Assembly: GCA_047495785.1 (NCBI GenBank)
Contig: JBLDXI010000048.1
Span: 124,001-188,000 of the forward strand
Length of the DNA stretch: 64,000 nt
From: Lepidodermella squamata
Taxonomy: Eukaryota > Animalia > Gastrotricha
Direction of reading: 5' to 3'
The first letter of the stretch is position 1. Each line of letters starts with the position of its first letter. Of the stretch, positions 7,153 through 54,913 are shown piece by piece. The notes beneath the pieces were generated by a model. It made no database searches and was not told the origin of the DNA. It was given only the letters and a program-made list of their open reading frames with translations. A program made the position numbers and the translations under genes.

Positions 7153-7714
7153 ACAATTTCGAACATCGCTGGCTGAGGTTATAGGCAATATTTCATGTGC
7201 CACGTCCTCGTTTAATTGACAACTGAAATCCAATAAAAAGACGAATTTATCAGCAAATAATACGGTCTTTTATTTCATCGCATGAAAGAAGTTCAACAAA
7301 ACATGGCTAACAAAACGGCTAGGCTGTACTACAACTAGCAATTAAATAAAAAACGAACGCAAGTATCAATCGCGAATTCGACACGATTATTCACAATTCG
7401 TATAAAAAGGAAGTCGAATGCATCTCTTTCTTTCGCAAATTACAACATCGAATTTTTCGGACCTATCAACGCTTTCGATCGAAAATCGACCAAGGCTTGA
7501 GTTTTCAGCCAATTTCAATTTTCCACAAAATTGAAGATTTAAAAAAATCTGACAAGTTTCTTTAAAACAATAGAATTTTTCCAAAGAATTTTTTCCGGAA
7601 ATTTAAAATTTTCTAAGGAAATTCAACAATTTTAAAAATCTTAAATTTTCGGGAATTTCAGCTGAAATTAAGAAAAAATTGATTTTATCCGGAAAATTCG
7701 ATATTGATGAGCTC

Positions 7715-9429
7715 TCAACAAGCATCATCATCAAGCCACCCGTTATCTGTCATGAGGCCAATAATCGCGCGTCGATGGGCCGGGTCGAGGCCGGGCGGGT
7801 AGCGCAATTTGACGGCGCAGCCACGCCGCCTCGCGAGGTAGTCCTTCAAAATGGCCGTTTTCACGCCGAAATACTGCTTGTAGGACATTTTCATCGAGTG
7901 GCACATCTTGCGCTCGCGCTCCGTCATCATGTCCGCGAGTTCGGGCGCGTAGTCGTCGTAGCCGGTGGGCGACGCTGCCGACGACCGCGTCGGGTAGGAC
8001 CGCGTTGGCGATTCGACTCGGTTCGTCTGAGGCGAAACGGGCCGAGGCGAGCGTTTCACTTCGGCGATTTCAGCCATCTTCTTCGCGCCATTTCTGGCGC
8101 TTTTGACAGGCGAAGGCGATGGAGACGATTTTTCTTCTGAAATCAGAAATATTCGATGAAAATTCCCAGTTTATTAGAGAATTCATTGTTAGAAAAATTG
8201 AATACAAGCGTTTAAATGGATCACAAATTTCAAATAAATTCAGCATACGTTTGAGCTTGGTGACGCCCTGGCGTTTGAGATTCGACAGTTGTTTGACTCG
8301 GTCGCGCAGTTGCTTCTCCTTTTTGAGACTCTCGATTAAACTTCGCATCTCCTCGGCCGATTTGTACCGCGACAACGGCCGCAAATATTCGAAGCTAAAA
8401 ATTTCAAATAATTTAAATAATCAAAATTTATCAGAAAATTAATGACCAACTTTGAGAATATATCGTTTTTGGAAGGCTGCGCCTGGCTTTGCTGCGCCAT
8501 TTCTTTCGAGTCTTTCGACCGTTTTCCCGACGGCGGCGCGGTATTCGAGGTAGAAGCCGAAGGCTCAGCTGCGGCTGGGATTACGAGGCCATAATCACGA
8601 GCCACCATTTTGTGCTTAATTCGATTGTCCAGCCTCAACCGATACCGATCGATTTGCCACACTTTATACGCTGGGAATAAAAATAAAAAAAAATAGCAAA
8701 ATTAAGATTTCAAGATTAATTGGTTTACCTATTTGGTCCTCGTCGTCATCTGCTCGAAAAACGAGATCGGCAACGAGTTGTTCGGCGTTGTGGTCGTATT
8801 CTAGTTCGAAATCATCGCGAAACGGGTAGTAGCCCAACTCGCGCTTCTCATCCAGCGTCATTTCAACAGGCGGCAGCAGCGAAACTAAAAAAACTTATAA
8901 TAAATTAACAGAAATAACTGAAAATATAACAAACTTGGCTGGGCAGGTGTTGAATGGTCCTGAATGTCCATATCGAGTTTATTCGCATTGAAAACACGCC
9001 GCAGATTTCCCTCGACAAACATCGTCACAAAAAATACCGCACATTCTGCAAAAAAATTAAATGATTTTCTGCCATTTTTTCAAATTTTCTCAACAAACCC
9101 TCTGGAGTTCGGCTAGGCACAGATTTCGCAATATTAGTCCAATTTCCGAAGCCGTGATGCTCGACCCCATCCAATAGAGCCAACGTCTCAGATGCTGTCC
9201 ATGTGATAGGTTTGTCGAACAGGCGAAACTGCCCGGCATCCAGCACGAAGTAGTCGTGGTCTTTGCGGTGCGGCCCTGCCTCGGCGCCGGACGCAAAACA
9301 CGCAAGGCACTCGTAGAACTCGTCGCACTGCGCGCATTTCACGCCGACGCCGCCCAATTTTCGCAGGCAGTACGTACAGGGCGGGAAATTTTGCAAAACT
9401 CCACCGCTAGCTTCGTTCGATGAAGCCAT
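7715..9429 (-). CDS. TADA2B: Transcriptional adaptor ADA2 (TADA2B-like), about 6 exons with short introns
   Basis: ZZ zinc finger (CTYC..CAQC..CLACF..GAE.GPH), SANT domain (WTASE..LLDGVEHHGFGNW), LGYYPFRDDFELEYDHNAEQLV, C-terminal SWIRM-like ERKMCHSM. Confidence 0.88.
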
Positions 9430-9835
9430 TTCACCTCATTTTTTCATTAAAATCAGGGGAAAATACCTAAATAAATTTAAAAAATATTGTTGTTTATAAA
9501 TGTTTGCTATTATTTCTTTTCGTCAAAAAATTGCAGTATTAATTTTCGATATTAAAGCAAGAGACAGCCGACAGAAAACGATAATTTATAACACATAACT
9601 CGGAATTTTTCTTTGATGAGCTTGAATTCAATATGGAAGTCAGAACTGGATGGCGATACAGAGACAAAACAGACAGCGAGACAGCACCGCGTATAAAAAC
9701 AAGCGAAAATCGGAAGCGTTGATAATTTTCTACGTAATTCTCGAAAATTGAGTCAGAGTTTAATCGTTTATTCAGCTCAGAGCTAGTAGTAGCAAACAGA
9801 AAAAGGCACATTGGACGTGAAAATTGAACAGAAAA

Positions 9836-11470
9836 TCACGAATTCCATTTCGAATCCGCCGACATTTCACCGCCATCTGAATTGTCTTCATCCGAAGACG
9901 ACGAAGCCGAATCGCCGCCTGTTAGCGCCCGTCTCCTCGCCTCAATCGCCCGCTCCAGCATCGCGTGGATATCCGGCAACGCGCCGGGTTTACCCCCGGC
10001 ATTGCCCGGGCCTGATTGACCGGGTTTATTCGCGTTATTTGCACCGAAAAGGCGCGATGAAGATGTGGAGTTGGTCGAATTCGACGGCTGGTTGCCGTTC
10101 GAGCCGGAATCTGAGCCTTGCCTAGCGACTGGTTTCAACTTTGTGCCCTTTCGAATCGCCTCGAGTAAATTGTCGCGGTTATTCGATGTCGCCTGGGCTT
10201 TTTGGGCCTGTTCCATTTTCCCAGATGACGCGGCTGGTTTATCGGTTTTCGCACCAGGTGGGCCGGGTGGTGGTGGCGGCGGCGGAGGGGGAGGAGGTGG
10301 CGGTGCACCTCCCGAAGGCGGAGGAGGCGGTGGTGGGGGCGGTGGAGGTGCTGGTTGGAGATTTCCGCTCGAAACCGGTTGCTTTTTCAGAGTTTGAAGT
10401 TGCGGTAACGGAGGAGGAGGTGGTACAGCAGCTGCTGCTGAATTTTGCGGCGGAGGAGGTGGCGGCGGCGGGGGTGGGGGAGGCGCCGGTACATTCAGCC
10501 TCGACTGGCTATAAATCTGAGAATGAGCCTGCTGAGGCGGAGACATGGGCGGCGGTGGCGGGAACTCCTCGTCGATACACATATTCGGAGGTGGAGGCGG
10601 TAACATCGATTCATGTAAATTCGTAGTCGTGTTACTCGCATTGAAGTCGGCCTGGTCATTTCCGTACATATACGACGTATTTGTACCCATCGCTTGTGAC
10701 CTAGAGCCGTAATTCGACTCTGAGGCTACACTCATGTTTTCGAACTGTTGATACAACGAGTTGTTATCGTCCTGACTCGAAGCTGCGTAGTTATTCTGAG
10801 GCACGAATTCGCGACCTCGAGCCATAATTTGATTTGTTTCTTTCATCTGAGCGCGAGGTTTCACAACCTTATCGCGATGCATAGTTCCGATATGTTGTTG
10901 CTGCTGTTTAGCTAAATGCTTGCCATTTGCAATAGTTGGCTGTTGAAATTCACGCTCCAAGTTCTTCTTCCATAGCTCGAAGAAGAAATCCGGGTCGCTG
11001 TATGATTTTAAACAAGACTTCGCCCCGGGATCTTGGAATTTGTCGAACGCGTCAAGGGGCGGCGGTCTTGCGCATTGGTTGTATAAATCGAGAAGAGCTG
11101 GTGGGGTAGTGTGCTTCGTGAAGAAGTGTTGCTCTGTAGAGTGATGCAGATGAAACGGCATTCGCATCATCCACTTATCCGGCGTTTGCGTCTCTTCAAA
11201 ATCAGCACCATTGGATTGCTCTACCCGCTCTTTTAACACGTCGATCCTCTGCTGCAGGTTAGCAGTGCGTTTGCAGATGGCAGCAGCATCGGCAAGCAGC
11301 TCGGCAAAAATGTCTTCCACATGTTGAGACAGCAAACTCAACTGTTCGATTAGCTGACAAATTGACTCATGACTGAGAGCAATCAACGGATATTGTTCGT
11401 TAGCACCGTCGTCAAATCCATCCAATTGATTAGTGCCCCGCGGTTGAACGGAGCGTTTCAAGAAAGGCAT
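9836..11470 (-). CDS. SCAR: SCAR/WAVE actin nucleation-promoting factor (intronless CDS, 544 aa)
   Basis: WHD (MPFLKRSVQP, PPPLDAFD, YSDPDFFFELW), poly-proline, WH2 (RDNLLEAIRKGTKLKPV), central helix and acidic tail with Trp. Confidence 0.95.
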   Translation of the reverse strand: MPFLKRSVQPRGTNQLDGFDDGANEQYPLIALSHESICQLIEQLSLLSQHVEDIFAELLADAAAICKRTANLQQRIDVLKERVEQSNGADFEETQTPDKWMMRMPFHLHHSTEQHFFTKHTTPPALLDLYNQCARPPPLDAFDKFQDPGAKSCLKSYSDPDFFFELWKKNLEREFQQPTIANGKHLAKQQQQHIGTMHRDKVVKPRAQMKETNQIMARGREFVPQNNYAASSQDDNNSLYQQFENMSVASESNYGSRSQAMGTNTSYMYGNDQADFNASNTTTNLHESMLPPPPPNMCIDEEFPPPPPMSPPQQAHSQIYSQSRLNVPAPPPPPPPPPPPPQNSAAAAVPPPPPLPQLQTLKKQPVSSGNLQPAPPPPPPPPPPPSGGAPPPPPPPPPPPPPGPPGAKTDKPAASSGKMEQAQKAQATSNNRDNLLEAIRKGTKLKPVARQGSDSGSNGNQPSNSTNSTSSSRLFGANNANKPGQSGPGNAGGKPGALPDIHAMLERAIEARRRALTGGDSASSSSDEDNSDGGEMSADSKWNS

Positions 11471-12709
11471 GCAGCCACACTGAGTAACAAACTCTCAATA
11501 AGGCAACGTTTCTAAATAATCCTAAAAAATCAATGAAATGTAAAGCTTATTGAGAACTGATAACTAGAGGCGAGAACTTCAGTCAGCAGCCAGCAGCACA
11601 CAGCTTGAATACTTGATTTGTAATTTACGTATAACCTACACCTGACAATTCAGCGGATCAAATGACATGTATCGTCTGCGGGATTTCGACAACTAGCGGG
11701 AAGCGGGAAGCGGGACGGGGCATAATCCACGATCAACGAGCAACGTAAGATTTTCGGCAACAAGGCAACAGACCGTAGATGTTGCAAGATGAGACCGAGG
11801 TGCAAACAGCAGCCACATAGATGGTGGGTTCGTGGTTCACAGTTCACAAAGTTTACCGCCAACTTCTTGCTTGGGCCGCTTTTGTGGTCATCGCCGAGAA
11901 CTGAAACATTGGCCGAGAGCCTTGGAAAGTGGGACTCGTTCTCGCTAGAAAGATTTTTCGAGCGCAAATATTTTAAAAAAATTCGAACAATTTTCAAAAG
12001 GTTTCCACAGATGTTGCAGTCAAATATCATTTACAGTTATTGCCATGAATTTAATTCATAATTGAAAAGATAATTTTTGATGAATCATTTTTTGCGGGCT
12101 CTTGGTTGGTCCGTTGCTTGGTCGGCCGTACATACGAAGGTTTGCCTGTGCTTCTCGCTCGTTCTCTGCATGTGTTTTTCCTGCTTCATGCTAGCTGCTG
12201 CTGCCTGACATTTCATTACTAACGCCTCCGCTTAAATAGCGCTAGCTTGAGAGTTTTCGTCATTTCGACGCAATAAACGGGACTTTTCATATCTGTTATT
12301 TTGCTAACGACCCTTGCCCTAAACCACGTTGATAGATAACCAATCTTCACAATTTACATAGATTTCACACGCCCTGTCTACGTAAACTACAGTTTTCAAT
12401 AGCGTGGCGCTTATTTGTTTTTGATATAATTCATTGCTGCTAATTAAGGTCGGTCAAACTCTCCGATCGCGTGCTCTTCAGGTGCTCTTAAATTCATGTT
12501 ATCACGTTGCTTTCTGAGGTCAAAGTCGTGTCATTTCTATTTAAATGCCCAAGTTCGACTGTATTCAGCAGTTGATACATCTTTTATCAATTCATCACAT
12601 TTTTAATAGTTCATTTAATCATTTTCTCCATTGATTATAGGGTCACCTCTTTTTTCTTTGTTAATTAAAAACTAGCAAGTGCGTACTGGTCTCCAACGCC
12701 AACACCTGT

Positions 12710-15194: not shown

Positions 15195-18100
15195 ATGAGT
15201 GACGTTCAGGAATTTGACGATGCCGAGTTCCAGCTCGACCCCGACTGCGAGTTGCGCTTCGAAGTCGCCGCAGCCCTGCCGCCCGGTTCGGTGATCGCCT
15301 CGTCGAAAGCGAAGAGTAAAAGCGAGGCGGGAGGCGGTGGCGGAGATTCTTCGCAGCAGGGCGGGTCATCAGCTGCGATCCCGCTAGCTGGGCTTGAGCT
15401 CGAGTTGATGCGCGGCAACGCGGAGCTGTTCGGCACCGAGCTGGCGAAGAACGTCACGTACACGTTTGCGGCCGAGTCGAAACTGGCGATTTTCACGTGG
15501 CACGGCGCGACGGTGCGCCTGCGCGGCCGCTGCGAGGTGTGCTACGTCGCCCGCGAGACGCCCATGGTCACGTACTTGAACACGCACGCGGCGCTCGACC
15601 AGCTGCGACGCCGCGCCGCCGAAGAGTGGGCCCTTCAAGAGGTGAGATTCAGCGTTGTGTCACTATTTAAATTTTCGGGAAAAAATTGAGGAAATATTAG
15701 CGTTTACGGAAAAACCTGAAATGTTCGAATGTTCGTAACTAACAGGTTTGAAAAAGTGTAAAAAATGTATTAAAATCAAGAATATAAGCTTTCGTTGGAA
15801 ATGAAAAAAATGAGGAAAAATTCAGATAATTACTGAATCAGTTACCATAGGGTTTTTTCCATCTCGCTGCTAGTTTCATATATCATCATTTCCTCCCTTG
15901 TGCTCGATTTTTGAGCTTAAGTAGGCTTGAGTTTCATTAAAGCCTCGTTTGCGGTTAGATATTCTACGCCACACGCCTACCCAGTTTTTCTTGAAGGGCT
16001 TAAATAAGGGAGCCATTTTGGGATACTTCGCATGTGAGCTGCTATGTTTAATCGATTGACGAAATGCCTCAGACCAGGCGACCCCTTTTGTTGCTCGAAA
16101 GCTCAGTTAGTTATGCTTCACGGGTGCAGCTAGTTCTTTGATTTTGCGAGACGAATCGAAGTCATCGTATTCGAGTTTGGTTTGTACCGCATCAACTCTG
16201 AATCCTCCTTCATCGCTGATAAATTGAGCTATGGTGATTTAGGGGCTTCGCAAGAAGTCGCAGGATTTTTCCGTCTTAGTTTTGTTGCCATGCTCATCAT
16301 CGCGTTGAGCATTGAGCGGATTTCGGCAGATGTCCATGACCGGATTTTCACGGTCTATTCATCTTGCTTCGTTGGCCGAAGCTTGCATCGAGGCTTGCAA
16401 TTCCCACGAACTTATTCGATTCTGGAGAACATTACGAGGCAAGGCGCCGAGTATGGAACCCTTGAATGCTTTATAATAAATCGATGGCATCAGACTTGCG
16501 TAGGGATACATCAACGACGCCGAAGGAGCACCATCTGGTGCATAGTGTAGTGAGACTTCTTAGATGAGAATTGCGCCAATTTTCGTTCTAAAATTCGAAA
16601 GTAGAATGTCAGCATGTTTTATTTGCTTGTTTGTTCGAGAGTTGCAGAACTTAATCATATCAGATATGGCTGGTCTGGGTAGACATCATCCGGCAGAACT
16701 GATCCTTCAACCCAAGCAGGATTCTCATGATCGGACTGACGTTTTAGGTCGGATTTTCTCAATAGACAAAAACCAAAGAAATGCTGAACCCTTCTGGTAA
16801 ATTTGAACCTGAAATGGTCTTACAATCAGAGAATTCCTCTTACCTATTGCTTTATCCTATTCATTTGAGTCTAGCATTTACATTCTTATCGATTAAATTT
16901 ATTCGATATATATATTTTGTTGAATTAATGTAAACTTCTGCGGGAAATCGAGTAATTTTTTACAATATTTTTTCCAGGCTGAGACGGCTAAAAAAGCGAA
17001 AGAGGCGAAGCCGCCGACTGGCGATGGCGCTGAGCCGGAAGAAGAAGAGCCAAAGCCGGATATTCGCGGCCCGCGCGTGTTCGTCGCTGGCCCGGCTGAC
17101 GTTGGCAAAGCCTCGCTGTGCCGCATCCTCGTCAACTACGCCGTTCGGTCGGGCTGGTCGCCGATTTTCGTCGATCTCGACCCGAGTGACAGCCAAATCT
17201 CAATGCCGTGCACAATTGGCGCAGTCATCGCCGATCGACAGGTAAAAAAGGAGGATAAAACCTACCTGGATGCCTTCACGTCGAATATTTGGCGACCTTG
17301 AAAATTGATTGAAAATTTAATTTTTCTAATTTCTGAGATGTTTCAGAATTTGGTAAAAATCCAAAAATAATGCAATAAATTTTCAAATTTATTTTTAATT
17401 AAGAATTATTCTTCAACCGCCAGCAAACTCCCTCTTTTTGCAGCGAATTTTTATTAGTGAATTCCGTCTACTTAGATTGGCGTGGAAGAGTCTTACGGCG
17501 AAATGGCGCCGCTGATGTACAATTTCGGGCACCACTCGCCGAGCGCCAACACGCAGCTGTACAATCTGCTGATCGCGAATTTAGCCGAAGCCGTGAGTCT
17601 GCGCACGAAGTCGGCGAAAAACGCGGCTGTCTCTGGCGTGATCGTGCGCGCGTCGAACTGGGTGCGAGCCGACGGCTACCAGTGCCTGGTCCACGCGGCG
17701 ACGTCCTTCGACGCCGACGTCGTACTAGTCCTCGACCAAGAGCGGTTGTGTTCGCAGCTGAAGCGCGAATTGCCGTCGCATGTCAAGGTGGTGCTGCTGC
17801 CTAAATCGGGCGGCGTTGTTTCGCGGTCGAAAGAACAGCGAATTGCGACGCGAGATGTGCGGATCAAGCAGTATTTCTATGGCGATCGAACGCCACGCTC
17901 GCTAACAGCCTGCCATTTGTTCCCTCAGGTTTGCTATTTTTTTCGATATTTTTCTCATTAAAATCGATAATGTTTTTGGTCACTCAATTTGCGTCGTGAA
18001 AATGAACCATGGTCCGTGTCCGTAGCTATTCAAGCGTGTAGCGCCACTGACTTGTTTGATCAATATAATTGATAAATTTCCTGATAAGTTCTAAAAATTC

Positions 18101-18793
18101 TGTTTTCCTCATGTTAACGGTCAATCACGTTGTATAAATCACGCGGTAGATCGCTCATCAACACTGGATTGATCGCAAGGAGAAGTCCGTCTTCGACCGT
18201 GAAAGTCCTGACTAGTTTGCGAAATTTTAGCCTTCCTGTTGTCCCTAATTCGAGGCGACGAATGATTTTAGACCTCAAATCGCGTGAATCAGCAGTTCAG
18301 CGTTAAGATAGAGGTTCAAAGGGGAAGTCGAAATTTCATGCATAAGTACAGCTATGAGACTAAGAGGGATGGGTTTTCGAACACAGATCTTCCCAAAATT
18401 TCCAGTCAATTTCTTTCCTAACTTGTAGATTTTTCAATTTTCTAGGTATTCGACGTGCGGTTCAGCGACGTGACGGTGTTCAAAATCGGCTTCGAAGCGC
18501 CGGTGCCTGACTCGTGCCTGCCCATCGGCCTGCGCGTCGAAGACCGCTCGACCAGCCTCGTGCCAGTCGCCCCGTCCTCAACCACCCTCCTCCACCGCCT
18601 TCTCGCGGTTTCTCAGGCCACGGAAGAGGACGAAGTCGTCGCATCGCCGCTACTCGGCTTTTGCGTGGCAACCGCAGTCGATGACACTCGAAAAATGATG
18701 ACCGTCTTAGCGCCATCCGCCCGCCCACTGCCCAACCACCCGAGTACGATTTTACTGCTCACGGAACACGCTTTCATCGAACGCGGATTTTGA
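15195..18793 (+). CDS. CLP1: Polyribonucleotide 5'-OH kinase CLP1 (exons about 15195-15641, 16978-17241, 17478-17928, 18446-18793)
   Basis: ELRFEV, AELFGTEL, AIFTWHG, Walker A GPADVGKAS, VDLDP, LPKSGGVV, YFYG, PDSCLPIG. Confidence 0.93.
16200..16760 (-). mobile_element. Degenerate LINE reverse-transcriptase fragment in CLP1 intron 1
   Basis: Reverse strand has a frameshifted (Q)GSILGAL motif resembling the RT PQGSxLGP box; otherwise decayed. Confidence 0.4.
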
Positions 18794-19193: not shown

Positions 19194-20260
19194 ATGAGTT
19201 TGCTGTTGCTAGTGGCCGTTTTGGCCGCAGTGACGCGAGCCGAGCAATGGCTTCCGCACGACCTGGCCTACATGGAGAGCGGCCTCAACATCATGTTCCC
19301 AACGAAGGAACCGCCTGACTTCGACTTCGAAAACCTATCAGCCATGATCGACGCGGCGAGTTACAACCCGAATTCGGCCCTCGTTCGCTGCGAATTTCTA
19401 CCCGATGAATTCGTCACCTGCGGCTTTGATTCGCCGGCTAACAATGCCCAGCAAGGTCAAGCCAACAACGCATCTTCAACTACTACAGCTTCAGGTAATT
19501 ACAAATTCAATTCAGAATGTTTTGCAGTTGGACTAAATTTCACCGCAAACTATGAGTCATTTGAATTTTGGTCTTCAATCATATTTTGTCATGTTTTTAA
19601 AGTCATAAGAAGGTAAAGGAAATCGTAATTTAATTTCCTTATAATTTATTTTTATTTTCGAAAATTCCGAAAAATTTTGCTAAATTTGTAGCTGAATTTG
19701 AGCTGAGAAATTAAATCAGAAATTTGAAAAAAATCGTTGCAGAAACTTGTTCAATTTTTTAAATTTGTGATTTTTTAATTATTCGAAAAATTTTGAATTT
19801 CGGCGGTTTAGGAAAATCAAGTTACTTCGATTTGATGCAGCGTAAAATTCATTTTTACTGATGAAATTTAGGACCGCTATTCCTAGCCGGCTCGGACGAT
19901 TACATCGCGAGTTGTCAGCAGTGGAATGCCAACAACATCGGCGCCTTGCTGCCCCTGCACCTCGCCCCCACGTGCACCGTGCTCGACGGCGTCATGTGCT
20001 ACGGCGAGCGGCGGTTCCAGCGCACAGATGCGCCGTGCGACCAACGCCCCGGCGAGCACTACTTCCTCACCGTCCTGCTCTACTCGGTGTTTCTCGGCTT
20101 TTTCGGGGTCGACCGGTTCGCGCTGGGCCACACCGAAACCGGGGTCGGCAAACTACTGACACTGGGCGGATTCGGCATCTGGTGGCTGGTCGACATCATC
20201 CTGCTAGCGGCTGGGCAGCTGGTGCCGCGTGACGGTTCCGGCTGGGCGACTTACTACTAG
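19194..20260 (+). CDS. TM2D2: TM2 domain protein, TM2D2-like (exons 19194-19494, 19872-20260)
   Basis: Signal peptide, [35 protein letters not shown]2 domain ([17 protein letters not shown]...[20 protein letters not shown]). Confidence 0.88.
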
Positions 20261-21799: not shown

Positions 21800-21988
21800 T
21801 GATAGCGTTAGCGACGCTCCAAAACAACCACTTTACTATTTTTAGAATTTATGAGGAAAGTACGTTCGATAGATAAAAAAAATCGGTTCTCAAAAGGCCT
21901 AACGTACTTCATCAATACGTTAGGCGACTAGAAGTACGATCGAATGAGTCATTTAAGTGGTTGTTTTGGCGCGTCGTTAACGTTATCA
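21800..21988. mobile_element. MITE-like inverted-repeat element
   Basis: GATAGCGTTAGCGACGCTCCAAAACAACCACTT ... AAGTGGTTGTTTTGGCGCGTCGTTAACGTTATC, about 33-bp terminal inverted repeats. Confidence 0.75.
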
Positions 21989-22369
21989 CATTAGGAAACT
22001 GAATTCAAGCTCTAAACATTCGAAATACTTTGAGTATTTGAGGCCTGATCAAACATATTTCGACTGATGATTTTCTACGAATCCTACATGAATAGTTTCA
22101 GGATCAGCAACTGAAGGCGAAGGCAAATATTTCGTTGAATAATTATAGGTGTGAATGAATAGAATAACGTGGGAATAGAGACCGTAGTGATCATGGAGAT
22201 CGGCAATGGTTGATTCGCACGCGAAGCATATTAATAAGACAATTTGCTATCAAAGAGGACTTGGCGTAATTTTAAGAACGTTGAAATTTATTCCGATTTC
22301 GTGCATTTGTGATACAGTTTTACCTTGAATTCTGTTATTTTATATTTTAGTATTTTTATCAGTATTATA

Positions 22370-25973: not shown

Positions 25974-26094
25974 GCTAATTTGAAGTGAAAAAACCGACTA
26001 GGCGTGTTTCAACTTCGCGTAGGTACTTTTTAAGAGAACGAACGCATGAAACACCCCTGCGAAATTACGGACACGGCAGCCGCGCGGACTCGAG

Positions 26095-26130
26095 ATGAGT
26101 AATGACTCATGACAGGTGGCGTGACGTCAA
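26095..26130. promoter_or_regulatory. AP-1 (TGACTCA, 26103-26109) and CRE (TGACGTCA, 26122-26129) cluster upstream of the secreted-peptide gene
   Basis: Perfect consensus sites 130-160 bp upstream of the ATG, plus a near-AP-1 TGAGTAA and a TATA-like TTAAAAA at about 26027-26033 on the minus strand. Confidence 0.5.
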
Positions 26131-40818: not shown

Positions 40819-41100
40819 ATATTACAACAAAAATACCTAAAATAGAACAGAAAATGTTGTAAGAAAATTATTCATTCCCCTTGAGCGTACAAAAATCGGT
40901 AATCAAACAACCACGGCTAGAGAGATAGAAGATTTCACGCAATCATCAAATTTCAAATTTTGTCGCAGAAAAACACTGCCGAAAACTCTTCTAGAATATA
41001 AAGCACGAATAAAATCTGATGAAAATATCAATTGCACAGGATAGATCAAGACTGATAAAATATATGCACCATAATAATCAAGATAAATGTCAACCCGAAA

Positions 41101-44100
41101 TCAAGCACTATTGCGGCAGAAAGGCATTGAGGAGGAAGGTGACTCAAGTAAAGCTCTACAACTGGATAGCAGCTCAGCGCCGGTCGACGGCGAAAATTGG
41201 CAATTCGAGGTAACAACTGCAAGTTCGGCATTCGAACACAACTTTTCACCACTAATCGATTGATCATTAGCAACATTTTTCAACATTTCCTTCAATTTCG
41301 ATGAACCAATCGAAACAAATGAAGGATTTGATTTCTCACTGCAAAATACAGTCGAATCGCGGAAATTCGCAATTTTCGACATTACAGCTGGGCTAATTAA
41401 TTGATCGAAATTAGAAAAATCTAGAAGTGATATTGATTTTGATTCCGAATTCAAGGAAACAATTTGCCGCAAGCAATCAATCGGCGAGGATGATTCAATG
41501 ATTGATACCTCCAAATTCGGTTGATGGGTCAAATCGCTCGATTCGACACAATAAAATCGACGAGCGAAAAATGGAGAATAAATCCGATTTAAATTCGGAA
41601 TATTTTTCTCACTCTTCCCCAGCCAAATGGCGAAAATCGATATTTCAGAGGCAATCATGGGTTGATCGAATTGATCGGGACAAATCGATTTTTCCGATGA
41701 TTCAGGCAATCGATTCAGCTTCGATTTTGCTGGCAGGGCGAATGGCTGCTCGATGGGGTAGAATTGAACTGATCGAATCGAACCCGAACAATCCGAGTCG
41801 GCCGATTTCCGCTTCGGGAATTCAAAATTCATGCGTCGCAGGTCTGAAATCCACGCCTGAGCACTTTTCACATCAAATTCCGTTGCGACAATCGAACTAG
41901 CGGCTAGATCTTGGTAGATCTTAATAAAGCACCCGCCAAAATCGAACTGGTCCGGGCACGTCCATTTCGATAGGAATTCGACCAATCGCCCGGCTGATTG
42001 GTACAAGTTCAGCTCGTCGGCGAAGTCCTTCAGGTAGTCGTGGGGATTGCGGGCCTGGAACGCGTTGGGCGACACGTAGCCTTTGCGGCCGCCGGCTAGC
42101 CACAGCATCGGTTGGCCGATGTACGCCCGCCAGATATCAGTCTCTCGCATGGACTAAAAAATTATATAAAAAAATTGTTCAATTGAAAATCACGGAAATG
42201 GAGAAAATTTGTCAATATATTTGCAAAAGATCTGAAGCTCGCTATTATTCTGATATTTGATACCCGTCAACAACCGTTTAATCGATTTAATCGATTATTT
42301 CAACTCGAGAATACTGACAGTATAATAGAGAAACGGTTCAGTTTGTGCTCCGTAAGTTGAACTATTCCTCAAGTTTCCTCCTAACGATACTATACAGGTA
42401 AATTGGTTGCGTTCGACATTGGTAAGCACAACTACACTGAACTTCTTCATGCATCGAATCCGGCGGCGAGCAGGCATTCAAATCGATCAAATACACCAGC
42501 TGCTCTCTTCGCAAGTACACCACACGAGCGACGAGTTCATCAAAGGCATCGACTACTTGTGCTCCCACCTGAACACATTGAGAATCTGAATGAGAATCTT
42601 TAGGCCACGGTTGTGGCGTTCGCAATTCTATTGCGCTGTGATGTTCTGAGAAGAGACGATAGCGAAGAATTAGGCGAGTCTTTTTTCTAGTAAACCTCTT
42701 GTCAGAATGTCAGCTGAATTTCGGAATCGTCTTCTAACACTTCTGCTGATTTTACTTCTCTGTTGAAGCAATCACCTCGCACTCGACGGAACTATCGGCC
42801 AAAAGCCAAGTTTTTCGCCGATGCCCTTGGATAAGAGGATTTTATCGCTAGTAACAGTTGGCTAGTAACGAAGCCGGCTTGTTCACGAAGGAATTTCGTT
42901 ATATTAGAAGTCTCATTCGATATTTTGGTCATTTTTGACTATTAAAAACTTCGCTACTCTCATTCTAATTCGCCCCGTTAGATGAGAAGGGTCAGGATTC
43001 AACCCCTACCTACCAAATAAACTAGTTTGGATCTCTCAGTGCCGCACCGATTTGGAATACCCAATCAATTGCATTCTTAAGAATAGCTATTTCGATCAAA
43101 TCAACTTACAATGTTCCAATGTTACATTTTAAGCAGTTTATATTTGCTTATAACAAGTGATAAAGGGGATCCCGCTGCTTTGATCCCGAAGAGAATCGCT
43201 ATCTGCACTTGCCTTCCAGGTATGTCAGCAATCATTCGCATCATATCGGCTATCACTGGATATTATCATCAACGCTTCACATCGAAGCACTGTCTCGCGT
43301 CGTATGGAGCAACGACAGCGAGACCCCAAAGGGTAACTACGCCTTCCTTATCTCTCCACACTAATGGACCGTTACAGGACCTACTGGGCTGATGAAAAGG
43401 GCCGCATCACAAATAACACGCTTGCTGCATGTCCACCACTGCCACCTCTGCCCCCTGTTCCTGGAAGGGGCATGCAAATCGTTAACACTTAAGTCAAATC
43501 GTCTCGCGGTGAAAGATGCTTTGCGCCAGTGCGCTACCTCCTGGTGTCATAAGCTGCGATGAGCCCTTTCAGCTTTCTTAAATATCACACATTTCTCATC
43601 ATAAATGTGTCGGTTCTCTAGGTGATGGTACCGTATTTCGAACTGAGAAAGATCCACATTATCGGATGAATTTCGACTTTCTTCAGTAGAAGACGAGGAT
43701 AGCTACGAAACTGAATATTTGGCTGCAGAAAGGCTCGCCGCAACTTGGAGCGCCGGTCTTTGCTAACTTCAATGCCGAGAAAGTAACCGGTATTCTCCAC
43801 TAAGTTAGCCGTTAAATATCAAGCAAATAATAATTCTTTCATAGTCTAATTTTGCAAATAGGTCTCTTTGTGACGACTGGATTGTCTAAACATACTGACG
43901 CCTTGTCGTGCCCTTTCTGCGCCTGCTATTTCGCCGAGTAAAAACCAACAATTTCTTCACCGTGTATTTATACGACCGCGAATTTTGGTGAGATAGCTCA
44001 TCTGCCGATCCGTCAGCGCGAATGACCGTAGTTAATGTGTTTAAAAAGCTTATGGAGATGGTGCAAAAGTAAACAAAACGATGGTTTATAGTCCAATAAC

Positions 44101-47100
44101 TTCCCACCTGAGTGGTACAATTTTTGTAGCCCTGCTCTGTAGCATGATCAAAACAAATTAAAATGACGATTGTGGCAGCGTGTCGTAGATCAACATGTCG
44201 TTGGGTCGAAATGTTACGTTAGGCCAAGGTGTCTCATTTACTCATTTACCTTATTTTTTAGTTATTCCTCCTCATGAAAAATTTTTTTACCTCGAGCAAC
44301 AAAAATGTGAGCCATAACGGAAACAAGCCGTATACAGTATTTCGATTAACTTACAATGTTCTTCGAAAACGGGAAGAACAGCAGAGAAAGCGCGTCGTGG
44401 GTGATGAGCGTGTTCTGCGAGTTGCTCTGGACGAAGAAGCCGCGCGGGATGACGATCGACGGCGCGTGGTCGAAGGTCAAGTTGATGGGCGTGGCGTGGT
44501 GCTTGCGCGTGAGCCTGAAAATGGCGTCCATGTCCGGGTCGCCATTCACGACGCCCTGGATCCAGGCGGGCGGCCGCGCGTCGCACAGTTTGTAGCGGCG
44601 CGGCGGCGGCCGGGCGACCTCGGACAGCGGGAAGCCGCGCGGCCACAGCGACGACTGGCCGAAGTGCGGCAGCGTGTTGATCGCCGGCAGCGAGTACTCG
44701 CCCGTCTGCGGGTCCGGCACCAGCGCCCGAACAGCTTCAGCTTTGCCATTGCCAGACAGCTCCAACATCGACTTCAAGTCATCCGTCGGGTGATTGTCGT
44801 CGTCTAGAATAAAGAATAACAGCTAGGTTAAAATATTAACACTTGGAATATCTAACTAGTGCATTCCGAATTTCTGGAATTTCAGGTTTCAAACATTTTG
44901 ATAGCATAATCAATCATTGACTCGTCTCTGGTAGATTGCTAATACTTTGTATCTTTCACCCTTAGATAGCTGTTTACTCTAACTAACCCAGTACCATAAT
45001 ATCTTCACAGCTCATGGGCCCAGCGATGCCTGTTATTAACGTACCTCCCGAAGTAATCCCTCACGAGTGACTTTATTTATTGGTCAGGAGCCTTTAAACA
45101 ATACCTGCGGCACCCCCATCGTGGTCAAGCACATATCGTTAGCGACGTTGAATAACTCGGATTTAGGCTTGTTTACATCCGTTTCAAGGTGAGGGGTGAC
45201 AAGTAAATAGTAGAGTTTTTTAACATGAACGAAGAGGCAAAACAAGAGACTTTTTAGTTGTCACCTCTAACCTTGAAACACATGTAAACAGGCCTAAATC
45301 CGAGTTATTCAACGTTGCTAACGATATCTGAAAGCGCATTTTCGAGGGGCGCTATTGACACGAAGAATGATTGGGAACACCGTGATTCAACAATACGTGT
45401 GCTGATGGTTCATCTAATTTCATTATATCGTAACCCCCAAGGCTACGGCTATGGCACGGTGGGAAGTCTTGAAGGCTATTGTCGACACTGCATCCTTGGT
45501 CAGAAAGTACCGAGCTATCATGATAATCTAGATGGGTCATTTGACTCCGGAGGGTTATGTCTGTGCTTTCGTTAAGTTAGTTGAGGCTTCACGGACGACT
45601 TCGACCTGTCACGTGTCGGTTACTTCTGAAGTAACTGACGAAGAAAGCGACGATTTGGTAGCAATGAATCAAGAAATCAACTCGTATACGAAATTGCGTA
45701 TCCTGTCACATTCACTCAGCTCAAGCAAACGTCGTAGGCGCTGGCCGGGCGCAGGTGACCCAAGCAAACGTGATGCCTCTTCGCGGCGCTGCTGATAAAA
45801 ACGGCGACAACTCAAAGGGATTGCTCATGGCGCACGCAAGTAATCAAAAGCCCTTGCAGGAAATGCGTCGAGGGATGGAAGACTACCTACAACGGCTACA
45901 AACACCGCTCCGTCCCTCTTGGATCCAGCTCGGTCCAGTATCACAGGAACGGAGTCCCCATAAGGCGCATCGACGACTGAACCTTGTGAACAGGAGTTGA
46001 GCGACAGCGAGAGCATCGAACGTCGCGAACACGGGTTGGTAGCTGTTGAGCACAAGCCCTGCGACATGTGTGCAGATTCCGCAGGTCTAATAAAAAAACT
46101 CTTCCGTTTGCCGCGAACAGGAAAATTTGCAGGAGTTGTCAGGCAGGCTCTGCGCATACACAAAAAATATTTGTCGAAAAACGAAACGAAATGTGGCGCG
46201 GAAGTCGCAGATGGCGTCTCAAATGACCCTGATGGCGCCTCTGGCAGCAAACGCAGGGCAAAGCGCAAGACTGCTGAAGAAAACTCAGTCGGCTCGAAGA
46301 AGCAGCGCGCTAAAATAGGCGAGAGCTAAAGGTTAATTATTAACTTTTATATTTCATCGAGCAAATTAATGCAATCATATCTTAGCTCTTCGGGAAAGGG
46401 CGAAATGCCCAATTAAAAGTGGAAGGCTTTCGCATTCAGACAGAACGCAGTGTGGAGTTTTTAGCATGAAAAACGGCGAAGTCGTTGTGAAAGAACTCCG
46501 GCCTAATGGAATCGCGGTGTTCAAATGTAAGCTGACACGGTGTCGAATTTGTAATCAAGAGAAGTGTAACCACTGGCCCGAAGGCTTTGCCGATTCACTG
46601 CCTTGTGAAGGGCTGCAGAAAGACCTACGTCAGAATATTTCACTGGTGTAATCACGTGGCGAGCTGCCATTCACAGGTTAAAATGGAAACGAACGAGTCA
46701 ATGGAGGTTCAGTCTCTGAGTGTCTGAGCCCGGTGTGAAGCAGGACGTTCCACCTGTCTGCCCCGAATGTGGTCATAAGACCCCGACGATAAAGGCAATG
46801 CAAAATCATTGTAGCTCACACCATCAGCTCTACTTTTCAACTGGCCAACCAAGTCGTGTCAAAGCTAGCAAGGTAACTTGCGTCCGGAAAGGTGCGTTCC
46901 GTAACAGCGCCCAGTCCACGATCCCGGTGAACCTGCTCGGTGCGATCATCTCTGAAAATGCATCTGCATCGGCTGGAGTCGAAAACAGAATAAGTCGGGC
47001 AAGAGCGCTTCTCACAAAGCTGCGTCCGATACTTTTACGAGTGCTGGGAAAAACGACTAAAAATGATTTGGCCTGGCTCCAAAAGTTCCACCCTGCGCAG

Positions 47101-48732: not shown

Positions 48733-51700
48733 TCATTTTTTGGAAGACCTAGTCTCAGTCGGCTCAGCCTGGCCTGAGACAAACATGTGCACACTGGAAG
48801 AGGAAGACCCAGCCAAATCTTGGTTGCTGTTCAGCATGCGTTGGGCCATTGCCGAGCCGACAATTCCAGCGAGTTGGAACACTTCGAATCGCGAGTAGAG
48901 CGCAACGACCTGGCACGCTTCGCCCGGCGGCGCGTCAGCCATCCAATTCGCGATTTCGGGGTAGAAATTCGGGTAGGACGGCAGGGCGTAGAATACAATA
49001 TTTCTCACTCCGCGAATTCGAAATCTACAATACAAATAATTGAGATTTATCTGAATTCAACTCAGAAATAATCAGGAAATTCAAATTATGCCGACTGTTA
49101 AGTATGGTCACGGCCTGTCTATTAAAGTGGACCTAAAACCCCGAACACTATTAGAGTTAATCCTGAACCTCGACTACCCATGAAAAAGCCGCTCGATTAG
49201 TAAGCCATAGATGCCAGAAAGGCCAAGAACGACTGCGCCAGTTGAGAAAAAGGCTAAACCCTCTCGACATGTCATTAATCGGCGTACCCAATGACGGGTA
49301 ATGTATTTTACTGACAATGACTCCGGCATTATTCAAAAGGACCGTTTTGAATTTCATTCTGGGCAGTGCAGACAACTTTGCTAGGGCGATTGGCGCACAT
49401 GGCCTGGCTGTTGACGGAAACCGAGAAGCAATGCTCGCAACTTTCGGTTATCGAGTTCTGTTTTCATTAAAGATATCGGTGCCATTTTTACCTGAAGGGC
49501 CTTATAGATTCACAGATAGCGGGCGGTTGGAAGGGTGACGACACGCAGACACTTTAGTCTGGATTTGCAGTGTCAAAGTCCACATATTTTTTGCTTCGAG
49601 ATGTGTGGTCGGGGCGGTGGGGTGGTCGAGAATTTTTTTATCATTTAATAATTTCTCGTGAGCATTATTCCCCCTTTAAAATATTCTTTTTTCATGACTA
49701 AAACGCGTAAAATCGCGGCAAAGGAAGCGGCAATTCAAGCCACAAAAGATGCGGCAATTCTTGAGGATAAGGATCGCAATCGCAAGCAGAGCGATGCGCA
49801 GCGAAAGAGTGCTCGAGAAAACGTGGCAAACACACGAAGAAAGGTTCAAGATCCGGCCGCTCCTGTTTAGCTTCTTCATGCGAGTAAAGCTATGAGCTAT
49901 GTGATGAATTAAGAGCTGAGAGGCTCAATAAAAAGTAAAACAAATGCGGTTATTTTCGTTACGTTTTCAGTGCGGTTAACCCGGGTCATGTCCTCTGATG
50001 ATCGGCCCGGCCGGCACAAAAATTTTAACCGCGGCATATCTAATCCATAAGGCTATCCGGAATCCTCTGGGGCCATTCGATTTGGAAAGAAATCTCGGTT
50101 TCGGTTTTTAGAGATCTCACTCTAAAGGCGAATCAGCTAGCCATCGATGAGCCGGTATCAAAGAAGAAACGAGCAAGCGATATTTTCGCCATGATTAGCT
50201 GCTTGGAGCTGCCAGCTGTCAGAGCGAATCGATTGAAGATCGCGTGAAAGGAGCTTGATGATTATCGCGAATTCAAATTCTAGCAGCTTTCTGAGCGCGA
50301 TGAGTTCGGCAGGTCCAATCCATTACGTTTTATGAAGTGAGTAATCTATACCTTCAGGAGTTTGAAAATTGAGAACTGAAATTTCCTAAACTAAAAGAAT
50401 GCCAGCAGCGGCGAGTCAGAGCGGCACTTCTCGTTTGCTGGGCATGTAGTTACTGGCGACCGTGGCAGCCTGGCCGCTGACTCAGTGGAGGCCTGCGTTG
50501 TTCTGAAAGAGGCTTTATCAAGAATTTGTGGCCGGCTCTCATTGCCGCAAAAATTTCTGCAGATTGAATGTTATTGATTGCCTTGTAATTGCGGAGAAGA
50601 TGAAGGATTGCCGATGGGTGACATGGGGTTCGGTGGAGTCGGCTTTTCCCCACCTGTTGTACCTCCGGCGGAATGCCGCGTGTACTTCCAGCGCGTGCTT
50701 ACCACGATCGGAAACGGCCGAAACTCGTTTTATCACCCTCTCAAACCCTGAGGAAGTCTACATAATGTGAATGCCGAGTTTCTCATCGACTACACCCTCC
50801 CATACTTATATAAGCTTGCTATAAAAGAGTATCAACGTACCGTTTGAAGAAGTGCATTCGTTCTGTGTACAGCAAAAACGTGATTTTGCCATGGAAAAAC
50901 AAGCTGCGAACGCGGGACACTTGACTGTCTTTCGTGTATCTGAAACATCGGAAACAATCAAAGATGTAAACAGTCAAAAATCAGAGAAACCTGCTACAAT
51001 AGATGTAAGCACGAAGTATCAAAATGACCAAAACGAATTTGTTTTATTTCACACCCTCCGTTAGGCAATGTGATGTTAAACTAAAAAAGATAGGGGACGA
51101 AGTACTATAATCTATTTTTAGAATTTGAACATCTTAGTGGGAATAATAAATTGCTGCATACATTTCGAGTGCTTAATGGTCATATTTTGAGTATATGAAA
51201 GCATATCACGACATGTTAGAGGCATAATGAGCTCGTTAAAATTGCTAAATGTAATAGGCATTAACTGTACGAGCGAAGTTAGAGCAATGCATTAATTATG
51301 AAGTTAATCTCAAATAGGATTGTTTCACCATCAATTATGAAATTTTGCATATTTCTTGGAAGGAGTAGCGTTGCACAGCTAAATGCTCGAATAAACTAAG
51401 AGCTATATAAGACCTAAAAGAACCAATGAAAGAAAGCATAAAAAATCCCCCATCTTTGATTGATAAAAATTCGAAAGCCGCATGTTCCTAGCCTTCGTAT
51501 TTTTCAAGCAGTTGAGCAGTAAATATTTCACTGATAATATGACACTAATAATAGCGATACTGAAAGGAAGTGTTACTCTGGGTCCGTGAGGCGTGTCGTT
51601 CGTGTGTTATCACGCCGTCATCTAGCCACGTACTCTTGACATTTTTGTCTCATTTGTTAGCCACGCCCTTCCCCTATTAATAGCCAACCAAAACATATTC

Positions 51701-54229
51701 AGGAATAAATTATTCCGAAAAATATGAACGTGAAAAATTCAAGTTTTTAGATTTTATTTTTTTCCTATAATAAATTTGACAAATGTGTCTGTGAAAAATC
51801 TGAGAAATTTAGTATTGACATAATAACTACTCTAAGCGTCATCAGTGACAATTGAGTTATTGACAATTGAGGCAGCTAAAAAATCGTTTAACATGTTTAA
51901 TAAAAAATAAAAAATCTATAAAATTTACTAAAAATCTGAGTTGCTTTAGTTACGTTAAATGTAAGATTTTCCTGAAATACTTACTCAGAAATCCACAGGC
52001 AGTTGAACTGCTCGCGTTTGCAGTAATTTCTCAGCCGCACATAGTCGAAATACGACGGAATAAAAATGATCGTGTGGCTCAGCTGCGAATCCACGATACC
52101 AGGCAGTACTTTGGTCGTAAAATACTCGAACCGCTTATCAGCCGCCGTCGACAAATCGCCCACGGCGTCATCCAATCGATGAAACAACTGCGGCGAAACA
52201 TGAGCAACATCCCCGATCGAGCCGTTTTCAACCAGTTTCGACACGAAAATCCGGCCGTTTCGATTGAACGAAAACTTCGTCATGAACGCGTTGAATTCCG
52301 GCAACATAACGCTGGATAGCAGCACTGTTTGCCGGTAGAATTTCGTCACGCCATTCAGCGCCCACATGCGCACTCGGCTGAAATCGACATCGTGCGGCTG
52401 TTTCGGCATTTCATTCAAATCTTTCATCACGGCGAGGACATGCTCCCAGTTCTGCATGAACAACACGTCGCCGTGGTCGATAATCAACATTTCGATCGAA
52501 CTCAGAAAATCGAACAGCGCTTCTTCACTCGACGCGACGCCTTTCAACGTCGGGTTGTTATCTCTCGGCGTGATTGACCTCAGCCCTAATGGACTGGCGA
52601 TTATTAGGTCTGACGCGTAGAAATCGGTGAACAGTTTCAACGTTCGTTTTGAAACGCTGAGGCCAATGCGAAAATTGTCGTCGCAGTTGCCGGAGAATAG
52701 CCGGTCGAAATCGGACGGCGTGTCGCGGAAATTGCGCGCCTTCCGCTGGCCGGGCTCGGTCGCGTATTCGACGCTGAATCGCCGCCGGTTCGACACGACT
52801 AGGCGCTCTTCTTCGGCGAGAAGCGACCACAGCGTTTGAACGACGCGGGCGCAGGTTTCGCGGAACGGCAGAAGGACGAGAATTCGGGCTCGCGTGAGGC
52901 CTCGATCTCGGTATTCGCGCTCAGTTTGATCTAAAAACAAAGCGAGGTTTATTTTAAATTTTCGAACAACTGAGTGAAAACTCAAGAAATAACTCGAAAA
53001 TTTTCTAATTAGGGTATAATTTCAAAGTCTAACAATTTTTTCACAAAATTTTCAATTTTAGAAATTAAATCTCTCCCGAATTTTCAAAATTTTCTGAAGA
53101 AATTTCCTGATTAAGTTAGGAAAAATAAAATTATCGAAATTAAAACGCGTTTGAATTCAATTTTTAGATCGAATTTTTGAATTTAGAAGCATCAAACTGC
53201 TTTTGAATTTTTGTTGAGAATCGAACCAAACCGATTTTTGCCGAAGTTCTTCAAAATTTCACTCTTCAAAATTTCTAATATAAATTCAGATTCAGCGTAA
53301 AATGTTGAGGTAATTAAATTTATTCAACCCGCCCTTAGATATTTTGAAGTTTTACACGTTTTTACAATAAATGGAGACAACTCACTTTTCTTATCTTTCG
53401 ATTTCGCCGCATTTTTTAACGCAGTGTTATTCAGCGCCACAATTTTCCGCGATTTCAACAGGTGGTTCAGAATATGAAGGCAGTAAACGAGCCGCAACTC
53501 TTCACAGTTATCCAAGTTGAATTTCGGCGTCGATAAATCGATGTAATTATTCAGCGCCACGAAAAATTCGTATTGAACAGGCGTCATAAGGCCGTTCAGT
53601 TTCGCCTGGCTTTGTGACTCGAGTTTCTCCAAAAATTTCGCATTCAACTGCCGAAATCTCGCGATTAACGTCTGCCGAACTTTCATCTGCTTCGCATCGC
53701 TGAACAAATCTGGATTTACAGCGTCTGAAATTTTGAAATTCGGCCCGCTCGGCTGGAATCGCGATAAATTCGAGTATGAATAAAACCCGGGCGATAGGAA
53801 CTCGGCATCGGTAATCGTCGAGCGTTGAAAATTCAGCTTTTCCCGACTCAACGAGTCGTCGCTCAGCTCGAGGCCGTAATGCGCGATGAAAGGGTCGTTC
53901 GAGCGAGACGCCGTGAAAGTGGTCACCGAACCGCCGTCCACCGTCGACGTGCCATCGTCGTCTTCATCGTCCGAGTTTATCTGGTCGTTTTCGTCCTCAA
54001 AAATCTCCTCCTGCTTCTCCTCCTCTTCGATCTCTTGTGGTTCAGTTTCTTCCTCTGCATCGGAATTTTGCGACTCGGATGAGGACGAGGCTGAATTTTG
54101 GCGTTTCTTCAATTTTTTCCTACTGTCTTTCTTCTTTTTCGCGTCTTTAACGAGGCAAGAAACGAGCGTTTTCAGCGAGTCGGCCGATGGATTTTCTTCC
54201 AATTCAATTACAGGCTTTCGTTTTGACAT
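48733..54229 (-). CDS. UTP25: U3 snoRNA-associated protein 25 / DIEXF (exons about 54229-53386, 52930-51986, 50939-50842, 49025-48733)
   Basis: YCLHILNH, RDRGLTR.RILVLLPFR, FSGNCDDNFRIG, DFYASDLIIASPLGLR, FLSSIE, MQNWEH, IFIPSYFDYVRLRN; a small exon missing from the ORF track encodes LLYTERMHFFKR; then FRIRGVRNIVFYALP. Confidence 0.93.
50130..50482 (+). mobile_element. hAT transposase C-terminal dimerisation-domain fragment (UTP25 intron)
   Basis: ASSGESERHFSFAGHVVTGDRGSL matches hAT (P)ASS..SER.FS.AG...T..R..L; upstream ELDDY and NPL segments. Confidence 0.7.
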
Positions 54230-54913
54230 TCAATTTAAATATTCTTAAAATCTAAAATTACAGCCAAATCGATATATTCAGGTATTTTAGGTCATTTTTC
54301 ATTGTCAAAGCACGTAATTTTCCCAAGTTACAAATATAATAACCGCAGCAAATTTTCATTTGGTTTCACTATTCAAATTGATTTTAGACACTAAAATTTA
54401 GGAAACTAATTTACCTTTGTTTTAATTTTTTGAAGTATCCTAAAAATTCACTGTCATCTTAATTTTATCAAAAATTAGACCAGACCGAAACCAAACCCCA
54501 AATTCCAGTTTCAAACTTCAATTTTTTCACCTAAAATTGTCAAAAAAATGACAATTTGCTGCGGCCTAGTGCATTCAACATTTCAAGAGCTCGAAGAAGA
54601 CTTTGAACAATAGCAAAAGCAATAGGTATACTTCACACTGGGATTATGATATGCACGAGTTTTATGTATCGGCGGAATATTCAAGCTGTTGTGGTGAATA
54701 TTAGAAGGAAAGAAAGAAAGGCTCAAATAACATTTTTTGGATACACAAGTTCAAAATACAAAAAAGCCCTCACTCTTTGAGTCAATAATAATTACCCGTG
54801 AATAATACTGAGATGATTACATACAAAAATGTGATGTATGGTGGAAAAAACAGTTGAGATAGCGATATTTCAAGTTTTCAAGCACCCATTTAGCATTTCA
54901 GATCCACTTGTAG

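Follow-up and report, generated by a model that had tools for sequence, protein, structure and literature searches.

The ten A/T-rich stretches that lie beside exons in one region of the gastrotrich Lepidodermella squamata raise the question of whether this animal carries periodic An/Tn clusters (PATCs). The region, G000:C48:124001-188000, is referred to here as the window, meaning the whole 64-kb stretch that was analysed. In Caenorhabditis introns, PATCs license germline expression in repressive, repeat-rich chromatin, and the original prediction for this DNA, which gave that literature accurately (PMC4947018), proposed a comparable sequence-encoded system. Our analysis shows that a weak ~10.5-bp A/T periodicity is real and genome-wide, standing above composition-matched controls. 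The A/T phasing is not a PATC-type long-range array, and the periodicity is not specific to transposon-rich genes. The best reading, which we regard as probable, is a weak and generic helical-repeat periodicity of AA/TT dinucleotides (WW), of the nucleosome or bendability type, in native AT-rich spacers.

The analysis covered the window and one arbitrary 10-kb sample from each of 17 other contigs, in an assembly of 121,234,032 bases in 151 contigs. Periodicity was judged against dinucleotide-preserving shuffles, block shuffles, and first-, third-, and fifth-order Markov models. An A/T run was defined as at least 3 nt and was counted as in phase when it lay within 2 bp of the best phase, and 134 AT-rich segments of at least 180 bp each, from the window and the genome samples, were scored individually. 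The window is gene-dense and eukaryotic in character, with a G+C content (GC) of 44.8% (mean of the 17 samples, 43.3%), and it contains three composition classes: exons at 52-61% GC, confirmed transposon and repeat copies at 38-52%, and unique spacers at 20-32%. The expectation that the host would not be Caenorhabditis is borne out by its identity as a gastrotrich.

The ten stretches are listed below, each with the outcome of its comparison with its own shuffles and, for some, the phase coherence of its run centres (R).

7500-7710: 3' flank of an ADA2-like gene, AT-rich and run-dense; p 0.17, R 0.25 against 0.26 in shuffles, not individually periodic
17300-17460: CLP1 intron; p 0.62, not individually periodic
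19620-19860: between two plus-strand open reading frames (ORFs); p 0.17, R 0.27 against 0.26, not individually periodic
25510-25800: p 0.34, not individually periodic
27000-27500: p 0.007
28220-28400: marginal
34900-35200: STELLO-like array; marginal, p 0.05, best period 9.5 bp, R 0.41 (p 0.012)
35940-36200: STELLO-like array; p 0.09, not significant
52940-53320: UTP25 intron; p 0.57, not periodic
54230-54560: p 0.006

All ten proved as A/T-rich as described, with 68-80% A+T (GC 0.20-0.32). They were said to be non-repetitive, and Tandem Repeats Finder (TRF) indeed finds no real tandem arrays in them; those tested for copy number are single-copy except for a colinear counterpart that lies on contig C10. 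Their placement next to exons also holds, as nine of the ten touch a coding-like open frame. More broadly, an open frame borders 72% of AT-rich segments, compared with 21% at random placement, a statistic that is partly circular because AT-rich DNA is full of stop codons.

The visual impression of a 10-11-bp rhythm has a simpler component. A/T runs occur at 0.76-1.31 per 10.5 bp across the ten intervals, or about 1.1 per helical turn overall, and this density by itself sets a mean spacing near 10 bp without any phasing. Successive run starts are separated by 9.5 bp on average, with a coefficient of variation (CV) of 0.59, compared with 10.3 bp and a CV of 0.67 in dinucleotide-preserving shuffles. 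The only gap class in modest excess is that of exactly 10-11 bp (47 observed, about 27 expected). The claim that runs recur every 10-11 bp thus stands only in part: the pooled periodicity is real, but what the eye sees is mostly run density, and eight of the ten intervals taken singly fail at p<0.01.

In aggregate, the periodicity is clear. AA/TT autocorrelation in the window has maxima at lags 9-12, 21, and 30-33, and Welch power exceeds that of block-shuffled controls by a factor of 1.3-1.4 at 10.25-11 bp (z 6-8) and that of shuffles by a factor of 1.2-1.4 over the broader 10-11.5-bp band. When the ten intervals are pooled, autocorrelation minima at lags 5-6, 15-17, 24-28, and 36-38 alternate with maxima at lags 10-11, 18-21, 30-34, and 44-45, and the oscillation statistic reaches z 5.6 (p 0.0025). 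The check proposed for this DNA, AA/TT autocorrelation and Fourier power against composition-matched shuffles, therefore returns a peak at ~10-11 bp above controls.

The same signal extends well beyond the ten intervals. In the 17 genome samples, AA/TT peaks stand at lags 10, 20-21, 30, 50, and 60-61, with z up to 13, and a lag-10 peak is also present in 75 AT-rich segments outside the ten intervals. Among the individually scored segments, 14% are periodic at p<=0.05 and 7% at p<=0.01. Its amplitude is small and its reach is short. Autocorrelation at lag 10 is 0.04-0.05 overall; in AT-rich DNA it drops from 0.04 at lag 10 to 0.007-0.008 at lags 20 and 30, and phasing is lost within one to three turns in most of this DNA. 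AA>AA and TT>TT pairs peak at lags 9-10 and AA>TT pairs at lags 2-3, while TT>AA pairs are depleted at lags 2-4; this is the arrangement of A-tracts expected to yield anisotropic bending. With respect to an antiphase G/C component, GC>GC and AA>GC pairs show no clear oscillation in AT-rich segments, where GC dinucleotides are rare.

Two possible sources of the signal were considered and rejected. Tandem repetition does not account for it, since no TRF arrays coincide with the AT-rich intervals, and the autocorrelation hardly changes when every micro-repeat is masked. Oligomer composition does not account for it either, as first-, third-, and fifth-order Markov models fail to reproduce the peaks at lags 10, 20, and 30; against the fifth-order null, lag 10 still reaches z 8 in 49 kb of AT-rich DNA. 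As a separate observation, the 234 kb examined contain 2.5-6 times as many two-copy micro tandem duplications of 7-12 bp as their 200-bp block shuffles; this excess shows no peak at 10-11 bp and does not account for the periodicity.

The pooled signal is unevenly distributed. Only 27000-27500 and 54230-54560 beat their own shuffles at p<0.01; two further intervals, 28220-28400 and 34900-35200, give marginal results, and the remaining six are null. Across all ten, R ranges from 0.18 to 0.41 and 44-72% of runs are in phase, which is about the level of shuffles. Three intervals (27000-27500, 28220-28400, and 54230-54560) carry the pooled signal, with z 7.0, and the remaining seven together reach z 1.8, with a statistic of 0.0084 against 0.0082 for the other AT-rich DNA of the window. 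The periodic AT-rich elements resolved in this way are as follows.

54100-54563: strongest AT-rich periodic island, which includes the start codon of UTP25 (54229, minus strand) together with about 330 bp of upstream sequence
27100-27450: periodic island in the 3' flank of a minus-strand gene (last exon 27515-28217); period 10.64 bp, power 3.66, z 5.7
26550-26882: periodic island in an intergenic spacer, absent from the list of the original prediction; period 10.76 bp, z 4.7
28198-28560: weaker periodic island, within the intron that precedes exon 27515-28217; z 1.6 for the whole 363 bp
12511-12699: borderline periodic AT-rich spacer just upstream of the start codon of the ornithine decarboxylase (ODC) gene; z 2.5, p 0.05
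30721-30924: AT-rich periodic segment inside a 2.1-kb transposon and covered by copies of that transposon; z 4.0, p 0.01

The island at UTP25 has its peak at 10.72 bp, with a power of 4.23 compared with 1.06 +/- 0.45 in shuffles (z 7.1), and it is single copy apart from the C10 copy. Segment scores follow the islands: 54169-54563 reaches z 5.1, 26561-26882 z 4.8, and 28198-28429 z 2.9 (p 0.01). At the 27000-27500 interval, the AT-rich periodic segment spans 26973-27523, and the interval has two genomic matches only, itself and C10. Segment 34855-35254 in the STELLO-like array scores z 0.8, and the corresponding interval, 34900-35200, is likewise single-copy apart from C10. The AT-rich islands of the window have periods of 10.6-10.8 bp and lengths of at most ~350 bp, and there is no phase link between them. 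A 2-kb coherent domain that seemed to span 26400-28560 with a single 10.64-bp period (z 8.5) was rejected as a by-product of period scanning: arbitrary shifts of 0-10 bp between its parts give equal maximum power, and the observed value is matched or surpassed at 32% of offsets, which shows that the islands are independent. Outside the window, the best phased A/T island of the genome samples lies at L014 3300-3700; it is non-repetitive, about 350 bp long, with a period of 10.2-10.3 bp and a power of 5.1, and to the eye it is more PATC-like than any stretch of the window.

PATCs themselves are dense clusters of 3-5 or more consecutive A or T residues in non-coding DNA, many of which keep a common 10-bp register across long regions of, for instance, 1 kb; such DNA accounts for about 10% of the C. 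elegans genome. Within Caenorhabditis PATCs are conserved, other nematodes give a mixed picture, and beyond nematodes they are rare, with PATC-like DNA reported in a centipede (Frokjaer-Jensen et al. 2016, PMC4947018). A preprint derives the C. elegans PATCs from Helitron minisatellites and describes PATC-like Helitron satellites in oyster (10.64898/2026.08.08.743475). In the original algorithm, a value of at least 60 occurs in less than 0.1% of random bases, and recent PATC work applies a 90% phasing threshold.

The ten intervals resemble PATCs in several respects. All of them contain dense A/T clusters in non-coding DNA beside exons, with short runs spaced about one helical turn apart, and they are non-repetitive, those tested matching only themselves and C10. 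The resemblance ends at the register. Whereas PATCs keep their phase over hundreds of base pairs to about 1 kb, no such register was found in any of the ten intervals; order here is gone within one to three turns and the islands are mutually unphased. The in-phase fraction of 44-72% falls short of the 90% threshold, and the period of ~10.6-10.7 bp differs from the 10.0 bp of PATCs. The proposal of a comparable PATC-like anti-silencing system is not supported by these results. In simulated phased arrays, 300-bp power was 12-16, and autocorrelation was 0.3-0.5 and persisted at lags 10, 21, and 31; the observed power does not exceed 4.2 in the window, and the best 300-bp island of the genome samples reaches 5.1. 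The observed amplitude is roughly a tenth of that of a simulated phased array.

The proposed tie between the signal and genes with transposon-filled introns did not hold up either, as the same periodicity is present in the 17 arbitrary genome samples. None of the spacers of the transposon-rich STELLO-like array is significant in the segment tests, and the best islands adjoin compact genes, UTP25 and the unnamed gene with its last exon at 27515-28217. The signal had also been described as weak or absent around WAVE, ODC exon 1, and SANBR; in fact, AT-rich flanks bracket all three, and the spacer upstream of ODC reaches p 0.05. Finally, transposon debris is not free of periodicity, as three of the five strongest distinct periodic windows (32250-32550, 45132-45330, and 49555-49845) are transposon or repeat sequence; they are listed here with the 2.1-kb transposon that contains the first:

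30532-32639: 2.1-kb transposon, with copies 99% identical on C32 and C19 and many older copies
32250-32550: highest-z window of the scan (z 13.5, period 11.0), a subterminal ~11-bp array near the right end of the 2.1-kb transposon
45132-45330: palindromic miniature inverted-repeat transposable element (MITE) of ~195 bp with a ~11.2-bp signal (z 8.7); the inverted repeat is visible in the sequence
49555-49845: dispersed repeat under the periodic windows 49450-50000 (z 5.2-5.5), with copies of 86-88% identity on five other contigs

In the 2.1-kb transposon, an ORF at 31662-32153 weakly matches HNH_2, and the subterminal array of the element, at about 32390-32500, has the TRF unit ACCGTGAACAC. 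The MITE matches about 20 loci, most of them in both orientations, at 78-99% identity. The periodicity of these elements differs in kind from that of the spacers: it consists of sequence-specific, multi-copy repeats and not of degenerate A/T clusters. Ranking sliding windows by z was rejected as a PATC detector, as its top hits are transposon ends and a region with a signal-peptide-like exon (25801-26100), not A/T clusters.

AA/TT (WW) periodicity has been linked to the rotational positioning of nucleosomes (Trifonov, Widom, Herzel), and it is established physics that phased AA/TT runs confer bendability and a rotational setting on nucleosomes. The signal in L. squamata has the marks of this generic class. 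AA/TT pairs separated by multiples of ~10-10.5 bp are more frequent than under composition-matched nulls, and this excess is present genome-wide in the 17 contigs sampled. Many non-mammalian eukaryotes carry a ~10.4-bp dinucleotide periodicity (PMC3117857), and the likeness lies in a weak genome-wide AA/TT excess with AA>AA and TT>TT peaks at lags 9-10; a clear antiphase GC signal of the generic pattern was not seen in AT-rich segments here, where GC dinucleotides are rare. A related case comes from worm, fly, and zebrafish, where ubiquitous and germline promoters carry WW periodicity over more than 150 bp at their +1 nucleosomes (Serizay et al. 2020, PMC7706728). The islands described here have a similar length of about 150-350 bp; the best of them covers the start and upstream flank of UTP25, and the spacer just before ODC is a borderline case. 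The +1-nucleosome signal sits about -50 to +300 bp from the transcription start sites of broadly expressed genes. The island at UTP25 appears to fit this promoter picture, while others would not, as they occur in 3' flanks, an intron, and a transposon.

On the explanation by generic helical-repeat periodicity, the ten stretches would be native non-coding gastrotrich DNA, that is, short introns, intron flanks, untranslated regions, and intergenic spacers. They would hug exons because introns and gene flanks consist of such DNA, and the GC-richer transposons would persist in the middle of spacers, away from splice and gene-end signals. A genome-wide helical WW signal would be overlaid on this composition, with neighbouring AA/TT runs mildly favouring a spacing of ~10-10.7 bp, which would give anisotropic bendability and a preferred rotational setting on nucleosomes. 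Order fades after one to three turns in most spacers, and in about 10% of them it builds islands of 200-350 bp, about one to two nucleosomes long. The signal could arise from selection for nucleosome positioning or as a by-product of nucleosome-phased mutation. Nucleosome positioning, which the original prediction offered as its alternative, is plausible on the evidence of sequence.

A number of points weigh against this explanation. The pooled ten intervals score higher than every one of 300 random subsets of equal size drawn from other AT-rich DNA, which indicates a real local enrichment that is possibly functional. The window is also somewhat more periodic than five Caenorhabditis odc-1 neighbourhoods, from C. 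remanei, C. sp. 36, C. bovis, C. angaria, and C. auriculariae, with a maximum power of 4.0 compared with 1.9-2.8. Because these Caenorhabditis loci are PATC-poor, the figure of one tenth of a PATC is based on simulation and definition. The scale of strength consists of simulated phased arrays and the published PATC definition, with proxies in place of the original algorithm of Fire et al., and the DNA examined amounts to 234 kb of a 121-Mb genome. For comparison, P. pacificus has a weak signal similar to that of the window, and Ciona has none.

The enrichment leads to the reading closest to the original prediction, an independently evolved PATC-like system in which short A/T islands shield housekeeping genes from transposon-borne heterochromatin and license germline expression. 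Three of the ten intervals and two further spacers are significantly phased, the islands flank broadly needed genes (UTP25 and ODC) in a transposon-bearing window, the pooled intervals exceed every random AT-rich subset, and there is precedent outside nematodes in the centipede and in the oyster Helitron satellites (PMC4947018; preprint 10.64898/2026.08.08.743475). We nevertheless consider such a system unlikely, given that there are no long arrays in register, that seven of the ten intervals lie at background, that no spacer of the transposon-rich STELLO-like array reaches significance, that the signal is genome-wide and also found inside transposons, and that the period is about 10.6-10.7 bp and not 10.0 bp. 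A narrower version, in which about one in ten AT-rich spacers would be a selected phased island of 200-350 bp that sets nucleosomes or blocks heterochromatin at the flanks of housekeeping genes, and thus a miniature non-nematode counterpart of PATCs, is a speculative possibility of similarly low probability.

The transposon ends with ~11-bp units that make up three of the five strongest periodic windows would also allow the islands to be of transposon origin and not native spacer DNA, as would the AT-rich periodic segment inside the transposon (30721-30924), the 2.5-6-fold excess of 7-12-bp micro-duplications over shuffles, and the derivation of PATCs from Helitrons proposed in the preprint (10.64898/2026.08.08.743475). 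Here the tested AT-rich islands speak to the contrary, being single copy without dispersed relatives and having a GC of 20-32% compared with 38-52% in confirmed repeats; masking all TRF arrays hardly alters the autocorrelation, and the micro-duplication excess lacks a 10-11-bp peak. Single-copy status and composition thus argue against a transposon origin, although an old one is conceivable, and we judge this account very unlikely. That there is no real periodicity at all, and that dense A/T runs in low-complexity DNA simply fool the eye, draws on the same run density discussed above, since about 1.1 runs per turn force a mean gap of ~9.5 bp (10.3 bp in shuffles), and on the eight intervals that singly fail at p<0.01. 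It deserves almost no credence, being refuted by the pooled and genome-wide tests, which reach high significance whether the null is a dinucleotide shuffle, a block shuffle, or a fifth-order Markov model.

The genes of the window were identified by Pfam scans run on single ORFs, one by one; the acceptor of the intron upstream of exon 27515-28217 was read directly in the sequence.

About 7715-9429, minus strand: ADA2-like gene, with a weak Ada2b C-terminal match in ORF 7715-8077
9836-11470, minus strand: WAVE
From 12710, plus strand: ODC
15195-18793, plus strand: CLP1, with domains in the ORFs flanking 17300-17460
Ending at 23468, plus strand: MAT1
27515-28217, minus strand: last exon of the unnamed gene
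29624-42150, minus strand: four STELLO-like N-terminal ORFs
51981-54229, minus strand: UTP25
57817-58488: MutL-like exon
62178-62894: SANBR

The UTP25 profile continues across 52940-53320, with positions 1-51 and 53-266 in the two flanking ORFs. In the STELLO-like array, the N-terminal part of the STELLO glycosyltransferase domain is found in four ORFs. One copy has its domain split over about 3.9 kb that contain the 2.1-kb transposon, and a word search with a 331-aa STELLO-like ORF gave a single homologue. On the minus strand at 25830-25990, an ATG-initiated hydrophobic stretch resembles, by eye, a putative signal-peptide first exon, with a TGACGTCA motif about 130 bp upstream of its putative ATG. 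A perfect run of 22 G at 26963-26984, in an intergenic spacer, is possibly artefactual because the assembly derives from DNA amplified by multiple displacement amplification (PMC11660948).

Other repeats were found as well. An AT-rich, MITE-like repeat of ~185 bp at 21800-21990, probably within a MAT1 intron, has more than 35 copies of 85-92% identity on many contigs, and the dispersed repeats at 46589-46937 and 33114-33691 have many copies of 78-96% identity. On a larger scale, each of the tested pieces of 17200-54600 has a colinear copy at G000:C10:2316960-2353503 (minus strand), with 81%-99% identity by segment and small differences in length. Either a divergent haplotype left uncollapsed or a large segmental duplication accounts for this copy.

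The outcome is a calibrated negative for the PATC claim, together with the caution that about one A/T run per helical turn appears periodic by eye. The work also identifies real islands, at 26550-26882, 27100-27450, 28198-28560, and 54100-54563. Were a PATC-like role for such islands true, L. squamata would represent a second animal lineage that shields its genes by PATC-like DNA, and what has been a nematode curiosity would become a general principle. The evidence favours an ordinary, weak helical-repeat A/T signal, a known and widespread property common to most non-mammalian eukaryotes.

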